Source: Phaeosaccion multiseriatum (taxonomy: Eukaryota; Protista; Ochrophyta, other classes). From it: DNA of 64,000 nt. The position numbers were made by a program, and so were the translations under genes. The notes below the pieces were generated by a model. The model did not search any database and was not told the DNA's origin. It saw only the letters and a list, made by a program, of their open reading frames with translations. Below are positions 4,478 to 50,972 of this stretch, piece by piece (position 1 is the first letter of the stretch; every line of letters starts with the position of its first letter). The stretch spans positions 496,001 to 560,000 of the forward strand of contig OZ218963.1 of the NCBI GenBank assembly GCA_965112735.1. The letters are read 5' to 3'.

Positions 4478-4536
<59 letters not shown>

Positions 4537-4610
4537 GCCTCTGCAAAGGGTATACCTTCTTGCCTGCTTGCTTGCTTCTCCCCTCTCTCTTGCCCGCTCT
4601 GGGCGTCGCT

Positions 4611-5599
4611 CTAATTGCGGGATGGGTTAAGTGCCTGTCAGAGCGATGATGTAGTTGATGACCGCGTACGGCTGGCGATTTTGAACTTCCTGTCTGCCGC
4701 CCGTGCTACTCGTAGCGCCCCCCCACATTCGTGATGTCGAAGATAATGTCGGTGTCAGCGTCGACGTTCTTGTTAGAAAACAGCCTCTTTTCTCGAAAGG
4801 GTTTCTCGAGTCTCGAGGGGGTTCGATTCGTCGGCGGGACATTCGCAGAGGACCGTCGAGCCTTGGGTCCTTCTTCTCCCCCTGCTGGCTTCATTCAAAA
4901 GCTCGTTGGCCTCATCCACGGTCATACCGGCTGCGGCCGCGGCGGCAGCGAGGGTATCATCCGCCGCATCACAGCTGCTGTGCAGTCCTCTCCTCTCCTC
5001 TGTTGGCCTGCGCTCGTGCCCGTGTTCTCAGATGACAGGATTGCGTTGTTGGGGAACGCTTCAAGAGCCTCGAGGGCTTCAGTTGTCGGATCGGCGTCCG
5101 TCGTGAAGAAGTTAAAGACCCCTGCAACAAATCGGGGAGATTGCGTACGGTAAGGTTGGTCGTCTCATCGCCACCTTCTTGTCCCATGTAGTACGAGGAG
5201 AGACCTGGGCCGCTACCAGCGCGAATAGGGACGCGGCCTCTCAAGTCGGGAAGACCAAAGGTGACTCGTGTATGGCGAGCGAGCAACGAGTGGGTAAAGA
5301 TGGGCAGCAGGCGCGGGAGGTGAGGGGCGGAGGGAGATGTGGCTGACGAAGTATCAGCCAGAAAGCGAGCAGCCACGGGAAGGGGGTGTCCTCGTGCCCC
5401 AGATTCAAGAGCAGGAGAGGGGCTGCGCAAGAGCACAGCAGTCAGGAAGCACACACTCACCGCCGTACTGAGTACCCAGAAGGGAGAAGAGTACCTCATT
5501 AGAGGAGATGTCAAGTAGTTGCCCATCGCAGAGCGCCCATCCACGTGGGGCGAAGTTTCCAGCGAACTGCGCGATCTGGCCTAACAGGGGCTTGGCCAT
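4611..5599 (-). pseudogene. Phage tail-collar domain (MdpB/microcystin-dependent protein-like) pseudogene, paralog of 17454-18503
   Basis: Reads MAKPLLGQIAQFAGNFAPRGWALCDGQLL...FGLPDLRGRVPI...QPYAVINYIIAL. Relative to the intact copy it has a 7-nt deletion before the donor, the intron acceptor CCACAG changed to CCATAC, internal indels, and a +1 insertion creating TAA just before PSRN. Confidence 0.85.
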
Positions 5600-6561: not shown

Positions 6562-6824
6562 AGGCGGCCCGAGGCTCTCCTTGTGTATACTCGCCCCTGT
6601 CCCTGGACCGCATCTGGGACAGTGCCAGAGTGGAGAGGAGCGCCACAGTCGAAGGAGCGCGCCTTTGGCAAGCCGAGAGACGGTCGGGGGGAAGGGAGAA
6701 GCAATACTGCTTCGTCGCTAAGGTGTTCTGGATCACTTTAATTAATCAAGCAGCAGCGGTAGCGCAGCAGCGGTGGCGGGTGGGGAGAAGCCGGAGGAGG
6801 AAACGGTCAGACGCTCCAGAGGGA

Positions 6825-9800
6825 ATGAATCCAGGGGCGGAGGCTCCTCCGCCTTCACTATCTCCCTTCAACGGCGGGGCGGGGGGGGAACCGCCAGCGC
6901 ATGGGCGGGGTGAGCTTCGCAGGCAGCAGTCGGCTGGGGAGACAACCTACCCCGACCTGCACTGGTACCTCGTCAAGGGCTCGTGGTTGACGGAAAGAAG
7001 AGAGCACGAGGGGGGCTTTGGGCGGCGGGAGAGAGGTGCGAAAGGGCCCGACGGAGAGGGGGGAGCGGAGGCAGGCACGTGGTACCCTGTCTACATTCAG
7101 CCCGTACGAAGTCGCCCCGCATCGCAGCAGGAGCAACCGCAGCAGCAGCGAGACGGAGGTGAGCAGCAGCGTGTGCACAGCCTGGACGTGGTGGACCTGC
7201 AGGACCTTCACCAGCGCTGGGGTTGCTCCTGGGCAGATATGACGCAAAGGCTGGAGGCGTGGTCGGCGGAGACCAGGAACGAGCCTGCGGATGAGGGTCA
7301 GCACAGGCAGCAAGTGACAGCCCCGCCACCGTCGTGCATGAGCCAGGTCCAGACCTACACAATGCAGCAGTCCAGTCTCTTTCGAGTGAGCTCGTCTCGC
7401 GAGTGCGAGCAAGCCACGGTGGCAGCCCGCAGCCACGGTCACGAGGAGGAAAACACCGCGCTGGGCAGCAAGAGTAGCATCGCAACGGGGCTACAGGTGC
7501 AGCTGTATGATAGAAAGCACTCACCGAAAGCTGCGGGGAGGACGCCCGGGCTGCTTGGACAAGCGCGACAAGGTGTGGAGAAGCGGTCAAGAGACGGCAT
7601 TCTCAAGGAGGCAGGGCACGCCGCCGAGGACCCGGATCTTCGAAAAGACGTGGTAGTAAGGCGAGCAGCGTCCACCACCGTAGGAGGATCCGAGGTTGGC
7701 GCCCAAGAAGGAGGTAGCAGGGCAGTGCCCCCTCCGACCCCGCCTCCTCAGGCCCGCCCCTCCCCGCCTCCCGCCCCAGCTCGCGACCCGCCGGGGCTCA
7801 GCGTGCTCAGCAGCGCGCCCGCCCGCGACGCTGACAGGAAGCGGAAAGGTCTTCTAACCACAGCCACTCCTTCTTCTTCTTCTTCTTCTCCTACTTCATC
7901 GCCGGTTAGCAACGCGGCCGAGCATGAGGATGGACGACGGTCTCAGCGAAGACGCCGCCCGAGCATTCGCGCCTGCGACTCGGCTCCCTCAATGGCCGGG
8001 TATGTGCACGAGAGGGCCAGGGACGCGACGACGCTTCTTGCTCCCTCGAGGTCTACGTCTATGTCGCCGCCGCCGCAGCTCGGAGGGTGGGCGGGGGGAG
8101 GAGGAGAAAGAGAAAGAAGAGAAGGAAGACCGACGAATGAGTGGTCAAGCTCGACTGTGCGAAAGACTACAATCACACATGGAGCCGCAGCACCAGCACC
8201 AGCACCAGCACCACCCGCACCAGCAGGAACGACTGGGCAAGCAGCCACTGGAGTACTCCGAGCCGAGAATGGGACCCATGAGGGAGCCCGCGCGCCTACC
8301 CCCCCCCCGCCTCCCACCCCAACGCGTGACCCGCCGGGGCGCAGCGTACTCAGCGGCACCAGCAACGATGGCAAGAAGTGGCAGGAGATAGCCACCACCG
8401 CCCCCGCCACGGCTTCTCCTCCTCTGGCGTCGGGCAGTGGCACAGTGGGAGCGCGGCTGAACAACATACAAACTGAGCCTAGCGCCGATGGCAGCCGTCG
8501 GTCTCAGCGAAGCCGCCGCCCGAGCATTCGCGCCTGCGACTCGGCTCCCTCAATGGCCGGGTATGTGCACGAGAGGGCCAGGGACGCGAGGACGCCGCTT
8601 GATCCCTCGAGGTCTGTGTCTGTGTCGCCGCCGCAGCGAGGAGGACGACGTCGAGGAGGAGCACACGGAGTAGGAGCAAGGCCAGCAGACGATGAAAGCC
8701 CCATCCCTCCTTCGCCGCGGCCGCCGTCCCTCCCCCAGGGCGAGACGGTACCACCATCAATAGCACCATCAACAGCACCCGCAGTATCAGCAGGGGCAGC
8801 AGTAGCACCAGCAGCAGCAGCACCAGTAGCAGCAGCACCAGTACGAGCCGTAGCACCACCAGCACTCCTGACCCCTGCACAGGGAAGTACCGACGCATCT
8901 TCTTCAGCGGCACTGCCAGCAGCACGAGCCCCCGTAGCAGCCTCCGCCGTCGCCAGGCAAAGCCCTTCTCCTAAGAGGGGGACAACGGGCCGCTCCTCTG
9001 CTACGCTGACAGCCACACCCTCCGCCGCGGAGGGGCAGCGACCGCGCAGGCAGACGCGGGTCAGCACCCTCCACGGAGAGTACGAGGGCCGCTCTCTCGC
9101 CGGGTACGTCAAGGAGAGAGCGAGGGATGCACGCACGCCCGCGCCACCATGGCAAGCTCCGCGAGGGCCCAAGCAGCCGCCCGAGGTGATGGTCGGTCCT
9201 CTCCTACCACCTTCCGCCACCTCCATAGCCACAACTACACCCACAGCCGCGGCTACAAGCACGGCTCGAGGAGCAGCGACAGCCACCACCTTCGGACGTC
9301 CCTCTGAGTCTGCAGGCACTCCCGTGTCTGTCGCTTATGGCGGAGCGGTGCCACCCGTAGCGACGCAGCCGGGAAGGCGAACGAAGCCGCCGGAGGCGCA
9401 GCAGCAGCACACGCCAACGGGAGGAAAGCGAGCGACGACCAAGTCCACCGACGTTGCCCCTGCCCCACCACCGCCCCTTCCAACGCCAACGCCGGTGGCG
9501 GCCGTTCCGGCGCAAAGGCCGCTCGAGATTCAGGGGGCAGGGGCTCAGCAGCGGCTCGGAGGGACTGGTCCTGTTGCCCTTCCCCCTGCCGCTGCAACAA
9601 CGCTGGTCCGGAGTGCTCCCCTGATGATCGGGCTCCAGCCTGCTCAGCCTCTTCCGCCCCTGCAGGGGCTCCAGCCGCCGCAAGCTGTCCAGCATCTTCC
9701 GCAGCTTCCGCCACTTGCACGCCGCCAATTCCAGCCTGTCCAATGTCAGCCCCTTCAGCCTCTCCAGTCTCTTCAGCCCATGCAAGGGTTTCAAGCGCTT

Positions 9801-11525
9801 CCACCTCTTCCGTCTCTCCAGCCCTTCCAGCCCTTCCAGCCTTTCCAACCTCTTCAACAACAACCCCCAGGGCAGAGCCTCCACACGACAGCCCGGCCTA
9901 CGGAGAGGGCTCTTACAGTGGCACAAGGGGGTGCACAGCAGGCACCGGGGGCGTCCGAGCAGGCGGCTGCGGCGGCTCCAGCGGCTGCTGCGAGAGTGTC
10001 TCCTGCGGCGTGGGGGAAGGGTGCGACCTCAGGCAGCGGTGCAGGAGGACCCGCGCAGACCGAGACCATCCGGCCAGTGCCGCCACCGCAAGGCAACGCG
10101 TTGACGCCTCCGTGCGGCGCTCAGGCGTGGCAGCGGCAGCCTGTGGGGACTCCGTCGGAAGCGGGAAGAGCGGGTCAGGTAGTGCAGGGGAAGGCAGGAC
10201 AGGGGCTGGCAGTGCAGGCGCAGGCATCCGTCGCGATGGTCGGACGCGCCGCTCCTCAGCTACGCGCTCCGTCCGCTTCTCCCGCTCCTACGGACACTCT
10301 GTATGGTCACGCCAGCAGCGGCACCATCGCAACGGGAGGCGGTTCCGGGACGCCGCAGCGAGGCCCACTTCTCCCCACCGGAGCGGCTTGGGGGCAGACT
10401 TGCGGCAGAGGGGCGGCGGAGGGGGTGAAGAGGAAGTGGCAGCATGAGGAGCGTGCGGCAGAGGCAAACAAGAGGCCGCGGCTGACTCCCGAGAGGGGGG
10501 CCGCCGCCCTGCCAGCAGCGCCCAGCACCGCCCCTTTGCCCTCTACAGTCAGCAGCAAACCCGCAGGGAGCCCCCCTCCCTCTTTGTCGGTCGTGCACAC
10601 GCCTGAGAAGAGGGGCCCGGCGTCGACTCCGGCGGGTGGCGGAGTCGCTCCCCTCTCGACCTCAGCAGTGGCTTACTCTTCGCATGAGCGAGTGAAGCAG
10701 CTCTCCTCGCTGGCGGCGAAGGTCGATTCGAAGAGCCCTTCGCGCGCGGGAGACAATTCCGCTCAGCGACGCCGCCGCCCGAGCATACGCGCTTGCGAGT
10801 TGGCTCCCTCAATGGCCGGGTATGTGCACGAGAGGGCCAGGGACGCGAGGACGCCGCTTGATCCCTCGAGGTCTGTGTCTGTGTCGCCGCCGCAGCGAGG
10901 AGAAGGAGGAGCAGGAGGAGCAGGAGGAGGAGGAGGAGGAGGAGGAGGGGGAGGAGGAGGAGGAGGAGGAAGAGGTGATGGAGCAAGACCGGCAGGTGAC
11001 GAGCGGAGTGGCAGCGATGAGAAGACTTATAAGAGTGTAGAGCAGCCACAGCAGAGGCCGGCCAAGAGACAGGCGAAGAAGAAGCAAGGGGGCACGACGA
11101 GGACAGGAGGAGGGGCCAAAGGAGGAGACAAGGGAGGGGAGAAAGGAGGAGCAGCGAGAAGGGCAGGAGATGGGAGAGAGCGAGGAGGAGGAGAAGGAGG
11201 AGGAGAAGGAGGAGGAGGGGGGGGGAAACGACGAGGAGAAGAAGCGGGGGGAGGCGACAGAGGTGATACGCTGTCCTCGAGTAGCAGCAGCCGCCACGGC
11301 ACGGCCCCGCTGGCCTCGCTTACTACAGCGGTTGGGGCTCTGGCCCTTCTACAGTTGGCGGCGTCGAGCCCTCGTGGACCGAGTGGGGAAAGCATGGCGC
11401 CGCCCGGGGGGGGAGGGAGCCCTTTTGGCGACGTGGGGGAAGGGAGGGGAGAGACGGCAACATCGCACCATATAACGACGCAGGAAAGAGAGGAAGAAGC
11501 ATCGAATGGAGCCCTGGCTGGCTAG
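6825..11525 (+). CDS. Large intronless low-complexity (Pro/Ala/Gly/Gln-rich) protein with internal repeats; possibly nuclear
   Basis: Uninterrupted reading frame of ~4.9 kb (6630-11525; first ATG at 6825). Four copies of S[ML]AGYV[HK]ERARDA. NLS-like KRKW...KRPRL and a C-terminal ALALLQLA motif. Confidence 0.6.
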   Translation: MNPGAEAPPPSLSPFNGGAGGEPPAHGRGELRRQQSAGETTYPDLHWYLVKGSWLTERREHEGGFGRRERGAKGPDGEGGAEAGTWYPVYIQPVRSRPASQQEQPQQQRDGGEQQRVHSLDVVDLQDLHQRWGCSWADMTQRLEAWSAETRNEPADEGQHRQQVTAPPPSCMSQVQTYTMQQSSLFRVSSSRECEQATVAARSHGHEEENTALGSKSSIATGLQVQLYDRKHSPKAAGRTPGLLGQARQGVEKRSRDGILKEAGHAAEDPDLRKDVVVRRAASTTVGGSEVGAQEGGSRAVPPPTPPPQARPSPPPAPARDPPGLSVLSSAPARDADRKRKGLLTTATPSSSSSSPTSSPVSNAAEHEDGRRSQRRRRPSIRACDSAPSMAGYVHERARDATTLLAPSRSTSMSPPPQLGGWAGGGGERERREGRPTNEWSSSTVRKTTITHGAAAPAPAPAPPAPAGTTGQAATGVLRAENGTHEGARAPTPPPPPTPTRDPPGRSVLSGTSNDGKKWQEIATTAPATASPPLASGSGTVGARLNNIQTEPSADGSRRSQRSRRPSIRACDSAPSMAGYVHERARDARTPLDPSRSVSVSPPQRGGRRRGGAHGVGARPADDESPIPPSPRPPSLPQGETVPPSIAPSTAPAVSAGAAVAPAAAAPVAAAPVRAVAPPALLTPAQGSTDASSSAALPAARAPVAASAVARQSPSPKRGTTGRSSATLTATPSAAEGQRPRRQTRVSTLHGEYEGRSLAGYVKERARDARTPAPPWQAPRGPKQPPEVMVGPLLPPSATSIATTTPTAAATSTARGAATATTFGRPSESAGTPVSVAYGGAVPPVATQPGRRTKPPEAQQQHTPTGGKRATTKSTDVAPAPPPPLPTPTPVAAVPAQRPLEIQGAGAQQRLGGTGPVALPPAAATTLVRSAPLMIGLQPAQPLPPLQGLQPPQAVQHLPQLPPLARRQFQPVQCQPLQPLQSLQPMQGFQALPPLPSLQPFQPFQPFQPLQQQPPGQSLHTTARPTERALTVAQGGAQQAPGASEQAAAAAPAAAARVSPAAWGKGATSGSGAGGPAQTETIRPVPPPQGNALTPPCGAQAWQRQPVGTPSEAGRAGQVVQGKAGQGLAVQAQASVAMVGRAAPQLRAPSASPAPTDTLYGHASSGTIATGGGSGTPQRGPLLPTGAAWGQTCGRGAAEGVKRKWQHEERAAEANKRPRLTPERGAAALPAAPSTAPLPSTVSSKPAGSPPPSLSVVHTPEKRGPASTPAGGGVAPLSTSAVAYSSHERVKQLSSLAAKVDSKSPSRAGDNSAQRRRRPSIRACELAPSMAGYVHERARDARTPLDPSRSVSVSPPQRGEGGAGGAGGGGGGGGGGGGGGGGRGDGARPAGDERSGSDEKTYKSVEQPQQRPAKRQAKKKQGGTTRTGGGAKGGDKGGEKGGAARRAGDGRERGGGEGGGEGGGGGGKRRGEEAGGGDRGDTLSSSSSSRHGTAPLASLTTAVGALALLQLAASSPRGPSGESMAPPGGGGSPFGDVGEGRGETATSHHITTQEREEEASNGALAG

Positions 11526-12539: not shown

Positions 12540-13918
12540 TCATCCCCCTTGAAGCCGCAACGAGGCAGGGTCAAGCAAGTTGGTGAGAATGCCGACCGAT
12601 GCGGCTCTGGCCGCAGCTGCTGCTGATGGTGCTGCTGATGGTGCTACTGATGGTGCTGAAGGACGAGAACCATTGACGGCCATTCCCGTGCGTCTCTCTG
12701 CGACCTTCTTTAGGAGCTGCTCGACCAAAGGAGGGCTGAGCGAGTACTGCCTCTGTCCCCTCTTCGCCTCTACTCCCGGGCCGCGCTTGTTTACCAGCCG
12801 CACTCGCACAGTGACGGACGGGCTCCCCTCCTCGCCTGCTTCCAGCATGGAGTAGTGATCCGCTGCAGCACAGAACCTTTCGGAGACGGCGTGAAGCTCC
12901 TCCCTGCCCTTGTTGAAGAAGATGATGATCACGTGCCCCATTCCGCTCTTCATGGCAGAATGAATCACTTCTTCGCTCTCAGAGGTACCCCCTGAGCAGA
13001 AGCGTGGCCGCCGTTGTCTTTCGGGCGCACAGCCACACACCTCCAGAGGAGGCTTTCCCGCCTTGCTTCGACATAGCGTCCATCTGCGCCCCAGCCTCCA
13101 CGAGCAGGTAGACCATCTTGATGTCTCCCAAAGCCGCGGCCAAGGGCAGTGCCGTAGACGAGATACGATCAAATTGGATCAGCTCGCCAGGGTGCTCTAG
13201 GCCCCAACCCACAGCGACGAAAAGGGGGGTGCGATCCCTCTTATCCGCTGCGGCGAGGCGGCGGGCATTCGGGGCAACGAGCTCACTCACGGAGCCCACG
13301 CAAGAGCTTTGCGCCCCAGTGAAGGGGGTCGAGCCGTCCCTCATCACCTTACTTTTGACGTCGACCTCCAGTCCCGCCTCGACAGCGCGGGATGCAGGCA
13401 TGGTGGGCTCAAAGTCGTCGCCAAGTGCAGAAGGCCAAAGGCATGTATCTGCACAGAGCCTTCGCCCTCTCCAGCCGTCGCCCCTCCTCCTCTTGCTCCC
13501 TCCCCTGGGGAAAGCACCGCTGGGCCGGTGTCCGTGACCGTCCTTGGCCTTCTCATTCGGGTCGGCCCCATCCTCGACGAGCAGCTCTACACAATTTCCC
13601 GCGTGCAGCAAGGCTTCCCTGCCCTCCCAACTAGCGTTATGCCTCAGCATGCACCTCACCATGTCGGCGCCACCCGCACGGGCCGCACGCGCGAGAGACG
13701 TCAAGACCGTATCGGGTCTAGGTCTCCGAGCGGGCATCCGCATTCGCCTCAACGCGGCCCTCAATGAACTCGCGACGCGCCTTGCAGCTCGTCAAGCAAG
13801 CAGAGCTTCTTCGCTTTTCGGTTGTCGTCGCTCTTGCGAGCTGTGTTGGTGTCCTGGCTCTGTGAGTCAAGCTCTCGACCAAGCCTTGGCCAAGACGTGG
13901 AGGAGAAAGGCGCCTTAG
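12540..13918 (-). pseudogene. Degenerate intronless ankyrin-repeat gene (copy B)
   Basis: Contains VELLVEDGADPNEKAKDG, AAADKRDRTPLFVAV and LAAALGDIKMVYLLVEAGA. Shares DNA blocks with copy A (13541-13573 vs 6103-6135; 13226-13259 vs 5718-5752). The frame shifts near 13000-13170. Confidence 0.6.
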
Positions 13919-14111: not shown

Positions 14112-17100
14112 TTATCCCTCGTGGTGCACGCGCCAGGCCTCAAAGTCGGTGCCCCATGGGCCCTCTACCTCGTAATCACCGTCGTCTGAGCGGCTCAGCA
14201 CCTGCTCACGGCCCCGCAGGATGGCCTCTCCGGTGACAGGGTCGTGCCGGAGCTGCTTGGTCTCGCCCAACACGCCCTGCCATTCGGTCGGGTCCGTGGC
14301 GGCGCCGGAGGGGGAGCCCACGATGAAGGTGTCCAGGGAGTGCGAGTGGCACCGCTCCACCTCCTGGCGGTCTGTACGGGGCGGAGTGCGTGTGCGTGTG
14401 CGTGTGCGTGTGCGTGTGCGTGTGCGTGTGCGTGTGCGTGTATGTATGTGCGTGAGTATCTTAGTGCGAGTGAGGGCACTGGGGGAAGCCCTGTGGAGGT
14501 CCTTGCTTCCTGCCCCTCCTGGCCGCCGATGTTTCGGTTACAAGGGGCCTTTCGCTCAACAAGCGCCACTGCACCACACCAGTCCTCGCTCACACCACCA
14601 GGGAGTACGGGGCAGTCGCGAACATGCAACACTCACATTCAATGTGGAAGTCGAACGAGTCCGCTGTCTGAATATACACGGACGCCCACCCTCCGTTGGA
14701 TCGATAGAGATCACCCCCCTCCCGCTTGGCCAGGAGCCAGGGTAGGCACGCCTCTCCGTCCTCGAGCTTGGACAGGCGGGAGCCAAGGAGGGACAAGGCC
14801 TGCCGGCCATTGGGGTCCAGATCTCTATCCTCCTTTCTCAAGGACTGTGCGTGTGCGTGTGTGTGAGGGGCGGAGGGTGTCACAGCCGGGGGGGGGGGGG
14901 CAGCCCAGGGTATCATGCACAGGGATCGACATTAGAGGCAGCGCAGAGGAGCAGCAGGAGCAGGGAGAGCTGAGAAGTCCGACTGAGACGGGTTAGTGTA
15001 GTGCTTGTGCGTCGACGACACTTCGCCGTTCGCTGCCACCAGACCGAATGATGCCAATGCTGTGTCTGTCTGCCCCGCCTTGGCTTCCCTCGGGAATCCT
15101 CGGGAATCGCCCCTCAAAGAAGAATCACTTGGGACATGCATGTCACGCAGGTCGAGCAAAGCTCCACGTCCGCAGCCCCCTCTGCAGCACCCTTTGATTA
15201 AAAAGCAAACAAGGATGCTTACTTACCAGCCTACGGCGCACGCGCTCCTCAGCCGTGAGGTCTTTCTTGGCCTTCTCTGCAAGGAGGAAGTCTTGCATAT
15301 GCACGTCTCGCTTGTAGGTGCAGGGTCCGAAGGCGTTGAAGGCGTACACCACTCCGTCATCGCTGAGCGGGTAGGCACCGGGTGTGGTGATGACGTGGTC
15401 GTTGATGGTTAGGCGCAAGTTGCCCTCTCCAAGGCAGGTTTCCACCGGCTCGTCGTCCGGGCAGCCGGGGAAGAAATCGGACGTGTCCAACACCTGAGGC
15501 GGGCGGTTGGGGAGAGGGCGGAAGGCAGTAAATGTCAGGGAATGAATGGCGCAGACGGCCGGGGGGCACTTATTGCGCGGTTGATTGGCAGCATATGGGC
15601 AGGGCACAATCGGTCTACTCGAGCTTAAGAGGCGCGGATGAAGGCAGCATATGGGCAGACACACTCGACTTCGGGGCCGCTCTTCCGCAAGTGGTACACC
15701 AAGCAAACGGGTATTCCCTTACGGCGCCGTCGCAGCCATGGGACTGGGCCAGAACGTACCCATACACCTCACCTCTACCAGCACCCGGTCCGCCACCGAC
15801 CCGTCCGAGTGCTTGAGGGCCATGGCGGTGGCCGTGAAGTAGGTCTGGGGCGAGGCAGGCAGTCACACAATAGGGGAAGGGGGGGGGGCAGCAGGAGGGA
15901 AGAGGGGGAGCGAGACGAAGGAAAGCCCTGAGTTAAAGGTTAGCTTACGTTACGGTATTCCCACCGAGATGAAGCACGTACGTCTCCACCACTCTTCCCT
16001 CTATCTGCTCGGTCTCCTGCCTGGGCAATCACTCACAGGCTCGAGACCGTTCTCACACTCCTCGAAGACCTCCAGTTTCCAGTTCCAGTCCACTCTCGGG
16101 CTGCGAATGGCATTGTACCAGCGCGAGTGCTGCCCCTCGAACAGAAACACCTGCTGCTGAAGGCCGTAGATGATGGGGTCGTTTCCTCCTCCGCCATCCT
16201 GCTGGTCCTGCTCAATGATGATGAGGGGGTGGGCGCCGAGGCAGGAAGACGCACAGTCCACGTAAGGAGGGGCGGAGGGAGGGAGGGAGGGAGGGAGGAA
16301 GGGAGAGGGAACGGGTTTTTTCGGCCTCTTCCCAGGGAGTCTGCATGGCTGGTATCCATCACAGACTGACGACGGCAATGATGGTGCGTAACTTGCGTGT
16401 ACCCTGGCTGCAAGCCGCAGCAAAGCAGCCAACCAGCAAATGCTTCATTCCTCCTGCCTGACCAGCCAGCCAAGGCCAACTCCAATCTGCAGTGCAGTAC
16501 TCACTCACCTTTGGTTCGCATGTGACGCGAGTAGTACGTGCCCCGCCGACACAGATCGCACCTCCACCCGCCGAGGCAGCAGCCTCTACATCTATCACAA
16601 GCTCCATGTCCGAGCTCATGACCACTTGCGTCGCTTCAGTCGTAACACCACCAAACCCACCCCCCACGCTTGCTGCTGCCTGCACTTGGACATGAAAGGT
16701 GATGATCTCGTCTTCAAGGCCAGAGGGATAGGAACAGGAGCCAGGACACGTCAAGGGAGAAAGGTGAGGTGCACGGCACGGGAAAGGCCTTAGCTAACTG
16801 ATGGGAAGAGTTGCTGAAGGAGGGAGGGAGTGAGAGAGAGAGAGCAGTGCAACGTACCTTCACCGCATGTGTTACTCGGCGCAGGGACAAAGGAAAAGGG
16901 AGCCTCTGCCTCAATGGTGAAGGGGCCAGTCCCCAGCAGGGTGCAGCTTGAGTCATAGGAGGTGGTGACCTTCACCGCGAGGGCTTCGTTGAAGGGCACA
17001 GCACCTACCAGCCCTGTGGTCGCTGGGGGAAGGGTGGTCAAGGAACAACTACATCCGCCCACGGGGAGGAATACACTGCTTGCCACCGCTGTTAGGCAGA

Positions 17101-17146
17101 GGAGCAGCGCCCGCGCCCTCTTGGCCAAGGCACAGCAGGCCTTCAT
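14112..17146 (-). CDS. Secreted/surface protein with C-terminal VWD/root-cap-like domain, multi-exon
   Basis: Hydrophobic N-terminus (LLLCLTAVASSVFLPV). Frame-consistent exons give NDPIIYGLQQQVFLFEGQHSRWYN...ECENGLEP|TYFTATAMAL...|VLDTSDFFPGC...CLGEG...|SLRKED...|YRQEVERCHSHSLD...GVLGET...DYEVEGPWGTDF*. The exon structure near 16250-16510 is uncertain. Confidence 0.7.
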
Positions 17147-17453
17147 TCCCCACCTTGCTTGCTTTCTCTCTCTTTGTGAAACAAAATATAAATCGGCGAG
17201 GGATAGTAGCTAAGGCTAGACTTTAAGAGCGGTATCGATCTGCGCCCTTACTGAACCAGTGTGTATCAGTGCGTCAGCTAAGGAGCTACACGCCTCACCT
17301 GTGTGTGTGTTGTATGTGTGGGTGCAAGCCCGGCGAAATTTTCGGAGAAATTGTTTCTCCTTCCCACAGTGCACTTCCCCCCCCCTCCCCCCCCCCTCTT
17401 TTTCTTCAACAAACACACTCACTGAGTAGCTCATACAATAAGAGGAAGCAAGG

Positions 17454-18503
17454 ATGTCCGAGCCCTTCATAGGCCAGATCGCGCAGTTCGCTGGAAACTT
17501 CGCCCCACGTGGATGGGCGCTCTGTGATGGGCAGATACTTGCCATCTCCGATAACCAGGCACTCTTCTCCCTTCTGGGTACTCAGTACGGCGGGGATGGG
17601 TGAGTGTGTGCTTCCTGCCTGCTGTGCTCTTGCGCAGCCCATCTCCTGCTCTTGAATCTGGGGCGCGAGGACACCCCCTTCCCGTGGCTGCTCGCTTTCT
17701 GATACTTGTTCGTCACATCTCGACTCCCTCCGCCCCTAGTACCTCCTAACTCCCCGCTCCTCGCTCCTCATCTATCCCCCGCCCCTCCCGCCCCTGCCTT
17801 TGCATCACGATGCCGTCTGTCCATCTTGACCCACTCGTTTTTGCTCGCTCGCCACAGACGAGTCACCTTTGGCCTTCCCGACTTGAGAGGCCGCGTCCCT
17901 ATTCACGCTGGTTCCGGCCCTGGTCTCTCCTCGTACCGGCTGGGAGAAAAAGATGGCGATGAGACGATCAACCTTACCGTACGCAATCTCCCCGAGCAGG
18001 GGTTTAACTTCCTCACGACGGACGCCGATCCGATAGTTGAAGCCCTCGAGGCTCTAGAAGCGTTCCCCAACAACGCAGTCTTGTCTGAGGACGCCGACGC
18101 TGGTCCATATCCAGTGCCACCGGCAAGGAGGGGACTGCACAGCAGCGGTGATGGGGCGGATGATACCCTCGCTGCCGCCGCGGCCGCAGCCGGTATGACC
18201 GTGGAGGAGGCCAGCGAGCTTTTGAATGAAGCCAGCAGGGGGAGAAGAAGGACCCAAGGCTCGACGGTCCTCTGCGAATGTCCCGCCGACGAGTCGAACC
18301 CCCTCGAGGCCTTCGCGCATCCCCTTCGAGGAGAGACGCTGCTCTCTGTCAAGAACGTCCCCGCCGCCGACGCCAAGTTCGACATCAAGGCTGTGCCCCC
18401 ACGCGACAGCACGGGCGGCGGACAGGCAGTTCCAAATCGCCAGCCGTACGGGGTCATCAACTATATCATCGCTCTTCAAGGCATTTTCCCATCCCGCAGT
18501 TAG
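17454..18503 (+). CDS. Phage tail-collar domain protein (MdpB/microcystin-dependent protein-like), 2 exons, 263 aa
   Basis: Exon 1 (17454-17599) gives MSEPFIGQIAQFAGNFAPRGWALCDGQILAISDNQALFSLLGTQYGGD. The GT-AG intron at 17600-17857 has a branch-like CTTGAC. Exon 2 (17858-18503) gives GRVTFGLPDLRGRVPIHAGSGPGLS...NRQPYGVINYIIALQGIFPSRS*. Confidence 0.92.
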
Positions 18504-18580
18504 AGCGACGCCCAGAGCGGGCAAGAGAGAGGGGAGAAGCAAGCAACAAGTAGGCGAGAAGAGCGAGCAGCAAAAGCAAC

Positions 18581-18686
18581 TCAATTATGTTGATAGTAGT
18601 AATGGGGGGAAGGAAAAAGAAGAGATAAAAACCTCAATTATGTTTATAGTAGTAATGGGGGGAAGGAAAAAGAAGAGATAAAAACC
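18581..18686. repeat. 53-bp tandem duplication between convergent 3' ends
   Basis: TCAATTATGTT(G/T)ATAGTAGTAATGGGGGGAAGGAAAAAGAAGAGATAAAAACC occurs twice. Confidence 0.85.
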
Positions 18687-18905
18687 CAATGTCCTCCCCC
18701 CTTCCCCCTCTTTTCAACGGCAAAGCCGCTACGAGCGCAGTCGGTGCCCCGCTGCTGTCTCGGTATACAATCTCTTCCTCTCCCTCTCTCTCCCTTCATC
18801 TCTTCTCTTCCTCTGTCCTCTGTTCCTCTGTCTCTCTCTCCCTCTCCGTTTCTCTCTCTCGTTTCTCTCTCTCGTCCCTTCCTCCCTCATACGATACCAA
18901 GGGCC

Positions 18906-36747: not shown

Positions 36748-36964
36748 TCGAGAAGTGGGGGAGAAGCACCAGAGGTGGGAAAGGAAGAGAAGAGAAGGGG
36801 GAGGGGAAGGATGTGGTGATTTGTATTTTTTTGTGGTGCCGTGGTGAGAAACTGTGAGCCTTCGACGATTCGAGTACCAACACGTCATCAATTCTTTTTT
36901 TCTTTCCCCATTCGACCTTTCTCCTTCTCCCCTCAGTCATCTCCCTCACAAGAGGGAGAGGATA

Positions 36965-38629
36965 ATGGAGGGCACTACATATAAGAGAGGCGCGAATGGG
37001 CTCTCCAAACGGCGGGGCAGCAACAGCCTCTCTAGCAGCAGGAGCAGCAGCAGCGGGACGGCGGCACTGAGGATTGTTGCTGGTCATACGTCGAACAAGG
37101 CTCTGTGGGGCGTGTGCAAGGAGGTCGACAAGGTAACCTCCCGCACTTTGGTGATCCATGCCGACATGCCCCAAGCTATCCAGTCCCGTGTGTTAAGTAT
37201 GTTTAAGCAGCAGCAGCAGCGGGGACGGGAGGAGGTTCAACGTCTTACTGCCGCCTCTACCCCTTCTCCCGCCCGGTACCCGGGGAACGGTAAGAAGAAA
37301 GGAGGTGTTGTGGGAGGGCTGCAAAGGTCGGGGAGGATTAGAGCGGACCATGATATGGCGGGCTCCTTTCGGGTCAGAGCGGTGCGCCTCCGCCTCCGCC
37401 ACCTCCACACCGATTCTGCACGAGCTGACCGGACCCGTGCTCTTGCTGACGAGGCTCTCGCTTCCAAAGTATTGGCGAGGCTGCCGCTCTCGGTCAAGTG
37501 TGTGCGTTTCTATGGGTGGTTCACCAGCAAGACAAGCGAAGCTGTGGTGGTACCGGGCACAGTGGAGGAGCTCGAGTTTTCATCCATCGCGGGGTTTAAC
37601 AAGCCAATCGTTTTCCCCGAGGCGCTGAGGAAGGTGACGTTTGGCCACGGATTCGATCAGGCTGATTTGGTGTTGCCAAGCTCGCTGGAGGAGCTCATGT
37701 TTTCATCGAACGCGGGGTTTAACAGGCCAATCGTTCTCCCCGAGGCGCTGAAGAAGGTCACATTTGGCTACGGATTCGATCAGGCTGATTTGGTGTTGCC
37801 AAGCTCTCTGGAGGAGCTAGCTTTTCCATTTTTCGCTGTTTTCAACAGACCCATCGTTTTCCCGCCCTCGCTCAGAAAGATTGTCTTTGGTTATCGCTTC
37901 GACCAGCCTGATGTGGTGCTACCAAGCTCTCTGGAGGAGCTGGAGTTTTCGCGGTTCTCTGTGCTCAACAGACAAATCGCCCTCCCTGTCTCGCTGAAGA
38001 AGGTCACCTTCGGGGAATGGCTGGATCAGGCTGATTTGGTGCTACCAAGCTCTCTGGAGGAGCTGGCGTTTTCGTCCAACTCGACCTTTGACAGGCCAAT
38101 CGTTCTCCCTGCCTCGCTAAAAAAGATCACTTTTGGATATCACTTCGATCAGGCTGGTTTGGTGCTACCAAGCTCTCTGGAGGAGCTCGCGTTTTCGTCC
38201 AACTCGGTGTTTAACCAAAGCATCACCCTCCCTGCCTCGCTCAAGAAGGTTACTATGGGGGGACTTTATGACCAGCCACTGACTGATTTGGTTTCACTGC
38301 ACTCTATAGAGGAGCTTGTGTTTCCGTGTTCCTCGGTGTTCAACGGGCCAATCGCTCTCCCCACCTCGCTCAAGAAGGTCTGTTTTGGCAATGCATTCAA
38401 TCGGCATTTGATCCTTCCCAGTGGTGTAGAGGAGGTGAACATGGGGCATGACTTTAACCTCCCCTTCCTGGCCCTTCCTGCCTCTCTGCGGACTCTTGCG
38501 CTGAGCTCTCAATACTCCTGCCCTCTGGAGAGCCTACCTGCTGGCCTGAAGAAGCTTACGATCGGGGAGGAATACCGGCTGCTGCCTCGACGTCTACCCA
38601 CGTGCCTCCACGTGGAGCGCTGTGTCTAA
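36965..38629 (+). CDS. Intronless FNIP-repeat (LRR-like) protein
   Basis: About 7 tandem 41-aa (123-bp) double FNIP units, LPSSLEELxFxxxxxFNxPIVLPxSLKKVTFGxxFDQxDLV. The N-terminal ALRIVAG...LWGVCKE is F-box-like. Confidence 0.88.
   Translation: MEGTTYKRGANGLSKRRGSNSLSSSRSSSSGTAALRIVAGHTSNKALWGVCKEVDKVTSRTLVIHADMPQAIQSRVLSMFKQQQQRGREEVQRLTAASTPSPARYPGNGKKKGGVVGGLQRSGRIRADHDMAGSFRVRAVRLRLRHLHTDSARADRTRALADEALASKVLARLPLSVKCVRFYGWFTSKTSEAVVVPGTVEELEFSSIAGFNKPIVFPEALRKVTFGHGFDQADLVLPSSLEELMFSSNAGFNRPIVLPEALKKVTFGYGFDQADLVLPSSLEELAFPFFAVFNRPIVFPPSLRKIVFGYRFDQPDVVLPSSLEELEFSRFSVLNRQIALPVSLKKVTFGEWLDQADLVLPSSLEELAFSSNSTFDRPIVLPASLKKITFGYHFDQAGLVLPSSLEELAFSSNSVFNQSITLPASLKKVTMGGLYDQPLTDLVSLHSIEELVFPCSSVFNGPIALPTSLKKVCFGNAFNRHLILPSGVEEVNMGHDFNLPFLALPASLRTLALSSQYSCPLESLPAGLKKLTIGEEYRLLPRRLPTCLHVERCV

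Positions 38630-38944: not shown

Positions 38945-50972
<12,028 letters not shown>

Follow-up and report, generated by a model that had tools for sequence, protein, structure and literature searches.

Small tail-collar proteins of bacteria (PF07484; COG4675 'MdpB, microcystin-dependent protein') are about 170 aa long and annotated as 'phage tail protein'; searching the literature for 'microcystin-dependent protein' and COG4675, we found no functional study of the bacterial family. Their genes come in groups, with 32 of 77 bacterial loci holding triplets and 52 of the 77 showing two to four Collar ORFs within 2 kb. Genes for DUF6916 (PF21880) adjoin, or are fused with, bacterial Collar genes (L121:94-852, P0051), and may be functionally associated with the bacterial proteins.

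In phage long tail fibres, three chains leave the collar, form the tip and return. Fibre tips of known structure (8KEC from Anabaena phage A-1(L); T4 gp37 tip 2XGF; T4 gp12 1OCY) share with the small proteins the order of collar, variable distal part and return strand, and are trimers in which metal ions are held by His-x-His motifs. Collar proteins, again small, also occur in elements that live inside algae and other protists, namely in virophages (DSLV2; OLV18, OLV19) and Organic Lake phycodnavirus (OLPV). OLV18 and OLV19, from Organic Lake virophage, carry the domain and resemble an OLPV protein family that also has it (PMC3671162), and 45 aquatic virophages have three consecutive PF07484 genes (PMC12724248). 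The tripartite tail genes of virophages are predicted to encode heterotrimers, and Collar proteins have been proposed to act in adsorption (PMC12724248, PMC3671162, PMC10385804). Phages, bacteria, virophages and giant viruses are the only places in which the literature we found mentions Collar.

Here we describe a family member (gene A) from the alga Phaeosaccion multiseriatum, which differs from the bacterial family in being eukaryotic, nuclear and intron-bearing, and which is a real, horizontally acquired and probably functional gene. It lies in a stretch of 64,000 nucleotides (contig OZ218963.1, positions 496,001 to 560,000; assembly GCA_965112735.1) that was analysed as a whole and is called the window below; all coordinates count from its first letter.

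Gene structure and genomic setting

Exon 1 of gene A (17454-17599, plus strand) opens with an ATG and contributes 48 codons plus 2 nt, which code for the N-terminal part of the Collar domain; an in-frame TAA sits at 17439, just 5' of the ATG (17454). Exon 2 (17858-18503, plus strand) includes the TAG stop codon at 18501-18503, and the two exons joined are predicted to encode a product of 263 aa. The intron between them (17600-17857, plus strand; 258 nt), predicted from the DNA, is of the spliceosomal type with a GTGAGT donor and a CACAG acceptor (GG/GTGAGT...CACAG/A), a pyrimidine tract before the acceptor and, about 27 nt 5' of the latter, a TTGAC that resembles a branch site. It splits the Gly49 codon after the second base and so is in phase 2. 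Without splicing, the frame would stay open for 49 codons and then run into a TGA that overlaps the GTGAGT donor at 17600. Within the intron, G occupies the first codon position at a frequency of 0.22 as opposed to 0.31-0.47 in exon segments, a composition that is non-coding.

Pfam Collar (PF07484) matches exon 1 with 72.9 bits (cut-off 24; E 2e-20) over profile positions 1-42, and the first 13 residues past the splice continue the profile at positions 45-57. Since excision of exactly 258 nt restores the Collar domain free of gaps, the intron lies inside the domain. This agrees with the initial annotation, which had assigned the gene to the Collar family and placed a phase-2 GT-AG intron of these coordinates within YGGD/G. 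Apart from the second gene copy described below (copy B), we found no other copy of the intron in the window, and an origin as an introner or through target-site duplication was discarded given that flanking direct repeats are likewise missing. The G-rich end of exon 1 together with the donor (17577-17604) is 72-85% complementary to C-rich intron stretches in 17726-17779; the arms are not collinear and this may be a composition effect.

The surroundings of the gene look eukaryotic. Lon protease domains (Lon_C, Lon lid) occupy separate open frames on the minus strand (39876-41586), an arrangement that would fit a multi-exon eukaryotic gene on the same contig. An FNIP-repeat ORF (36854-38629, plus strand; Pfam E 2e-49) and an ankyrin-repeat ORF (12979-13764, minus strand) belong to repeat families that are also common in giant viruses, and the window is rich in microsatellites. 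Among the ORFs scanned in the window, neither viral hallmark genes near the locus nor fibre or baseplate genes near gene A were seen. Between the two Collar copies runs a 1,631-codon open frame (6630-11525, plus strand) that is rich in Pro, Ala and Gly and has no Pfam match; a motif of about 40 residues (..RRRRPSIRAC..APSMAGYVHERARDA..) recurs in it four times, once diverged.

A search for sequencing runs with this stretch brought up four DNA-like runs of one sample and no RNA run. The unitigs of these four cover gene A, its intron and its flanks, at a depth like that of the flanks, and show no spliced form. One unitig (16800-17499) spans the border between the upstream flank and exon 1. At 18546, a loose end matches the 3' flank of copy B, which therefore is present in the reads, too. 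A variant unitig, of similar depth to the reference path, skips or replaces 17702-17840 within the intron; both splice sites are retained in it, and position 17873 shows a synonymous C>T. We take from this that the interior of the intron occurs in a second form. The unitig was rejected as the other haplotype, its depths not being additive with the flanks and the letters in between not being given. Other letters at 18206 and 18214 are those of copy B, so they may come from this copy rather than from an allele.

That the conserved parts of gene A stay near the bacterial consensus might be taken to indicate bacterial contamination or a chimeric assembly. To our minds, the chance of this is close to nil: the intron has canonical signals and recurs in a second copy 12 kb away, the unitig at 16800-17499 joins the upstream flank to exon 1 with flank-like depth in four runs, GC3 is like that of host ORFs, and eukaryotic genes and microsatellites lie all around. 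The Lon, FNIP and ankyrin ORFs together with the unitig link thus uphold the view in the initial annotation that the gene has a eukaryotic setting and is no contaminant.

Relation to bacterial small tail-collar proteins

A word search with exon 2 gave 5,843 matches, mostly of 160-220 aa; among the best 120, all names given are bacterial ('phage tail protein', 'tail fiber protein', 'microcystin-dependent protein') and most rows are nameless. The best Atlas clusters are 100% bacterial, and the spliced protein matched ORFs of named GTDB genomes with a phmmer E of 1e-53. For hmmsearch, we built a family profile from 64 bacterial MdpB-like Collar proteins. Its positions 2-104 align with residues 3-105 of gene A (181 bits) and its positions 139-171 with residues 231-263 (46 bits, E 4e-16), the latter being the conserved C-terminal segment (TGGGQ...QPY..NYIIALQGIFPSRS; 18402-18500, plus strand). 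Gene A is collinear with bacterial small tail-collar proteins from Met1 (M-x-EPFIG) to the last residue (..NYIIALQGIFPSRS), and it shows the COG4675-type layout from end to end, from the M-x-EPFIG collar to the C-terminal GGGQ...QPY..NYIIALQGIFPSR.

Over residues 1-96, identity with the closest prokaryote-type proteins reaches 74-79%; on the contig of the closest one, genes are packed as tightly as is typical of prokaryotes, and DUF6916 genes are among the neighbours. In 111 bacterial homologues, 71 columns show a conservation of 85% or more, and gene A keeps 66 of them. With 181 and 46 bits at its two ends and 66/71 conserved columns, the termini do follow the bacterial Collar/MdpB consensus, as had been claimed. 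Gp10_C (PF21939) could not be found in the second half of gene A at E up to 1, a signal that is present in only part of the bacterial family, and NCBIfam models match neither gene A nor a bacterial member. Locus scans with the single protein (IMG/VR, GTDB, metagenomes) revealed no close relative; one metagenome match (L116) is an intronless tandem with His-x-His.

One could argue that gene A comes from an old, vertically inherited and already described family of eukaryotic Collar proteins, as our evidence on this point consists of best hits only, which bacteria dominate. We consider this very improbable, however: names and taxa given among the best 120 matches are all bacterial (most rows being nameless), the best Atlas clusters contain nothing but bacteria, the expanded middle of gene A (see below) is absent from 5.8 billion clusters and 1.84 billion representatives, and the literature found places Collar solely in the phages, bacteria and viruses listed above.

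Loss of the His-x-His motif and expansion of the middle

Right after 'LP', 99% of the 111 bacterial homologues have both histidines of a His-x-His motif, presumably a metal site, whereas gene A and copy B read Q-G-F in the alignment with these homologues (Q96-G97-F98; 17997-18005, plus strand). The two histidines account for two of the five departures of gene A from the conserved columns (Q96, F98). Bacterial exceptions to 'P.H.H' nearly all still have H-x-H, behind A, T or G rather than P.

Further on, the family profile skips residues 106-230 (18027-18401, plus strand), an acidic and Ala-rich middle of 125 residues where bacterial members have about 34 variable profile positions. Measured from the His-x-His site to QPY, the distance is 145 residues in gene A versus 43-79 in 172 bacterial ORFs (median 56). 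The composition (25 A and 23 E+D in 140 residues) is accompanied by RRG, GRRR and CEC motifs. In the annotated frame only, 17997-18413 is coding-like, with G at first position at 0.47, GC at third position at 0.71 and zero stops, and GC3 of the middle resembles host ORFs. An in-frame intron hidden here that would remove the expansion was considered and rejected, as candidate GT..AG pairs of length 3n have neither pyrimidine tracts nor good donors. Relatives of the middle were found neither by word search nor by exhaustive phmmer of 1.84 billion representatives nor in Atlas (two phmmer matches were dismissed as tandem-repeat junk), and no protein carrying the expansion turned up among the 5.8 billion clusters or those 1.84 billion representatives.

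In its opening part, the middle still shows the consensus spacing of 14 for P...Y. This sign, weak and judged by eye, suggests an expansion and not a wholesale replacement. The middle of gene A is better described as an expansion, by about 90 residues, of a region that is naturally variable in the family. The confidently modelled part of it is confined to residues ~149-177, predicted to form two short helices (18156-18242, plus strand; AF2 pLDDT 75-90, elsewhere 45-55), and these helices fall in 18130-18305, the stretch best conserved between gene A and copy B (96.6%). The initial annotation had correctly noted the loss of His-x-His (99% of 111 homologues versus Q-G-F in gene A) and the acidic, Ala-rich middle with RRG/RRR sites and a CEC motif. 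Its 'replaced middle domain' holds in that the middle is an orphan without relatives, but not in the sense of a whole replacement, given that 125 residues compare with about 34 in an expanded region.

A decayed paralogue and probable constraint on gene A

What is new here is a paralogue, copy B, which shares the intron of gene A and, like gene A, has lost His-x-His. It was detected by tblastn of the spliced protein against the window, in three frames (4624-5599, minus strand), and has its intron at the same position; the initial annotation had proposed that paralogues be counted and their inserts compared, and within the window this one emerged, sharing the expansion. Unlike in the bacterial tandem sets, there is a single intact gene in the algal window, and the pseudogene lies 12 kb away from it on the other strand. 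The unit shared between the two, intron included, begins some 15 nt 5' of the ATG and ends some 45 nt past the stop, and the flanks beyond it are unrelated (40-48% identity).

Compared with gene A, copy B lacks 7 nt at the end of exon 1, reads CATAC in place of the CACAG acceptor and carries exonic indels of +6, +2, +3, -4, -2, +3, +4 and +1. Even under the most favourable splice model, which takes a nearby AG as acceptor, premature stops persist. Judged by these lesions, copy B is a pseudogene. Because intron, Q-G-F and expansion are common to both copies, the gain of the intron and both other changes predate the duplication, and as the initial annotation had it, the intron is a gained one, which must postdate the acquisition.

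In the conserved parts, A-B differences leave the commoner bacterial residue in gene A 18 times and in copy B 6 times, an asymmetry that is our main evidence and argues for selection, or constraint, on gene A. Copy B lost the invariant G47, D48, G49, A36 and H65, while gene A changed only L28I. Identity between the copies is patchy: the opening 103 nt of the intron and the stretch 18130-18305 reach 96-97%, other parts 72-91%. This suggests gene conversion, which would blur the selection argument.

The order of features shared between the copies underlies the sequence of events that we propose. A prokaryote-type small tail-collar gene (~170 aa) would have entered the algal nuclear genome by horizontal acquisition; thereafter His-x-His would have been lost, one spliceosomal intron gained in the Collar domain and the middle expanded by about 90 residues. 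Duplication would have followed, with one copy decaying and the other staying under purifying selection. As the dead copy preserves an intermediate, four steps can be put in order: loss of the metal site, gain of the intron and expansion of the variable tip, each of them ahead of the duplication with decay of one copy.

A less generous reading sees gene A as a non-functional or dying relic of the transfer, its frame open by chance or because the transfer is recent, and its protein without a role, unexpressed or unable to fold with the His-x-His clamp gone. Both histidines are lost after all, and with a motif of 99% conservation gone, the canonical fold may no longer form; no paralogue other than the dead copy B is present, which may point to a lineage in decay; the middle has no relatives and is mostly of low model confidence; and in this GC-rich DNA other frames across the middle are open as well. 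Still, we think a relic unlikely. Since the A-B split, gene A has changed 1 of the 71 conserved columns and copy B has lost at least 5 in addition to suffering frameshifts, the asymmetry of 18 to 6 points the same way, the splice signals of gene A are intact and the strong first-position G excess of the middle is seen in the annotated frame alone.

Past the 3' end of copy B, near 4500-4550, there is a (CAA)n microsatellite. At gene A, a unit of about 54 nt, present twice in tandem (18580-18687), directly follows the 3' end common to both gene copies, and CT-rich simple repeats that start at ~18770 recur throughout the window.

Structural relatives and likely mechanism

When the 64-sequence profile was compared with solved fibres, it matched the long tail fibre of Anabaena phage A-1(L) (8KEC; E 1.6e-10, positions 26-157) and T4 gp12 (E 2e-5). 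The family profile was needed for this; a PDB sequence search with exon 2 alone gave no match. In 8KEC, the matched part is the 'arm' domain, described as gp37-like by its authors (PMC10966104). The profile covers the whole arm of this protein (A-1(L) gp34), i.e. the collar, LPSHQH, a long variable part and GNGQ...QPY. By this comparison of profile and structure, the small tail-collar family is homologous to the fibre tip, with collar, distal variable part and return segment. There are differences, too: gene A has no N-terminal shaft or baseplate-attachment domain, its ORF starting at the collar with a stop upstream, and in contrast to the trimeric tips with their metal ions held by His-x-His, it is without the histidine motifs. 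In cultured phages, matches are confined to the collar core, with identities of 52% or less, and exon 2 has none.

Homology of the family to the distal arm and tip of fibres makes a trimer the likely mechanism, and with one intact gene this would be a homotrimer rather than the product of the three-gene set that is usual in bacteria and virophages. We envisage that trimer assembly still depends on two conserved parts, the collar at the N-terminus and the closing segment at the C-terminus, that the histidine metal clamp is gone and that the distal end would be a flexible acidic module with a short helical pair. As a monomer, exon 2 alone was modelled by AF2 with pLDDT 55, and so was a genuine bacterial member (P0011; 64 sequences in the alignment, pLDDT 55). 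Since the bacterial member models equally poorly, low confidence for the algal protein is not evidence of disorder, and the poor monomer model of the bacterial protein would fit an obligate, intertwined trimer.

Gene A has no leader peptide, as is the case for most bacterial tail-collar members; those with a signal peptide have an extra 20-45 residues before EPFIG. Its N-terminus aligns with the first residues of leaderless bacterial members, so a secretion signal is not apparent, and absence of a signal peptide makes it most likely that the protein is both produced and retained in the cytosol. All in all, we regard it as rather likely that gene A is a functional, horizontally acquired nuclear gene for a trimer-forming collar with a flexible acidic distal module.

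A more far-reaching idea is that the alga has reused a receptor-binding scaffold of the phage, virophage or giant-virus type as a host factor: a homotrimer with a new acidic, metal-free tip for binding a partner from a virus or bacterium. It might, for instance, serve as decoy or sensor for giant viruses and virophages that use the same fold for adsorption. To us, this seems quite improbable. In a similar vein, the initial annotation had proposed the display of a new tip domain, possibly in microbe or virus interaction, for which we find no support: the signal peptide is absent and most of the expansion is of low model confidence (the bacterial control being no better). If the functional trimer-forming gene that we favour is expressed, it would offer a clean and datable case of a structural gene of the prokaryote or virus type that was remodelled inside a eukaryotic genome, and place the fibre-tip fold in a cell-biological setting in which tagging or knock-out could show its job off the virus; if unexpressed, it would be an ordinary transfer relic.

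Source of the gene

In a tree of 110 family members, a phylogeny of the kind that had been proposed with the initial annotation, the algal protein falls among rows from bacterial genomes, albeit without a supported sister group. Its nearest rows are from Balneolota, Pseudomonadota and Acidobacteriota (path lengths 0.96-1.2), bacterial phyla are intermixed throughout, and IMG/VR rows lie at longer paths, of 1.39 or more. On balance, we favour a donor of the prokaryote type.

Arrival by way of a giant virus of algae, or of a virophage or polinton-like element integrated in the genome, instead of directly from a bacterium is nonetheless a scenario with some points to its credit. Collar is carried by OLV18, OLV19 and OLPV proteins (PMC3671162), 45 aquatic virophages have their three consecutive PF07484 genes (PMC12724248), and the FNIP and ankyrin ORFs in the window are of a kind common in giant viruses. 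Moreover, an IMG/VR contig of 391 kb (L102) encodes a Collar protein of 163 aa beside a DXD-motif glycosyltransferase and an ABA4-like gene. This protein, however, keeps its His-x-His (SHTH), and its identity over the N-terminal 97 residues is only 44%, compared to 74-79% for prokaryote-type proteins; the nearest tree rows are all bacterial, with IMG/VR rows starting at 1.39; and no viral hallmark gene was seen near the locus among the ORFs scanned. So a viral route strikes us as doubtful, and we prefer the prokaryote-type donor. The bacterial or phage origin stated by the initial annotation accordingly stands as far as homology to the bacterial small tail-collar family goes, and is not narrowed further, given that giant viruses and virophages carry Collar as well.

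Elsewhere in IMG/VR, the short contigs L083 (5.5 kb), L087, L081 and L082 consist largely of tandem arrays with three to nine small Collar genes.
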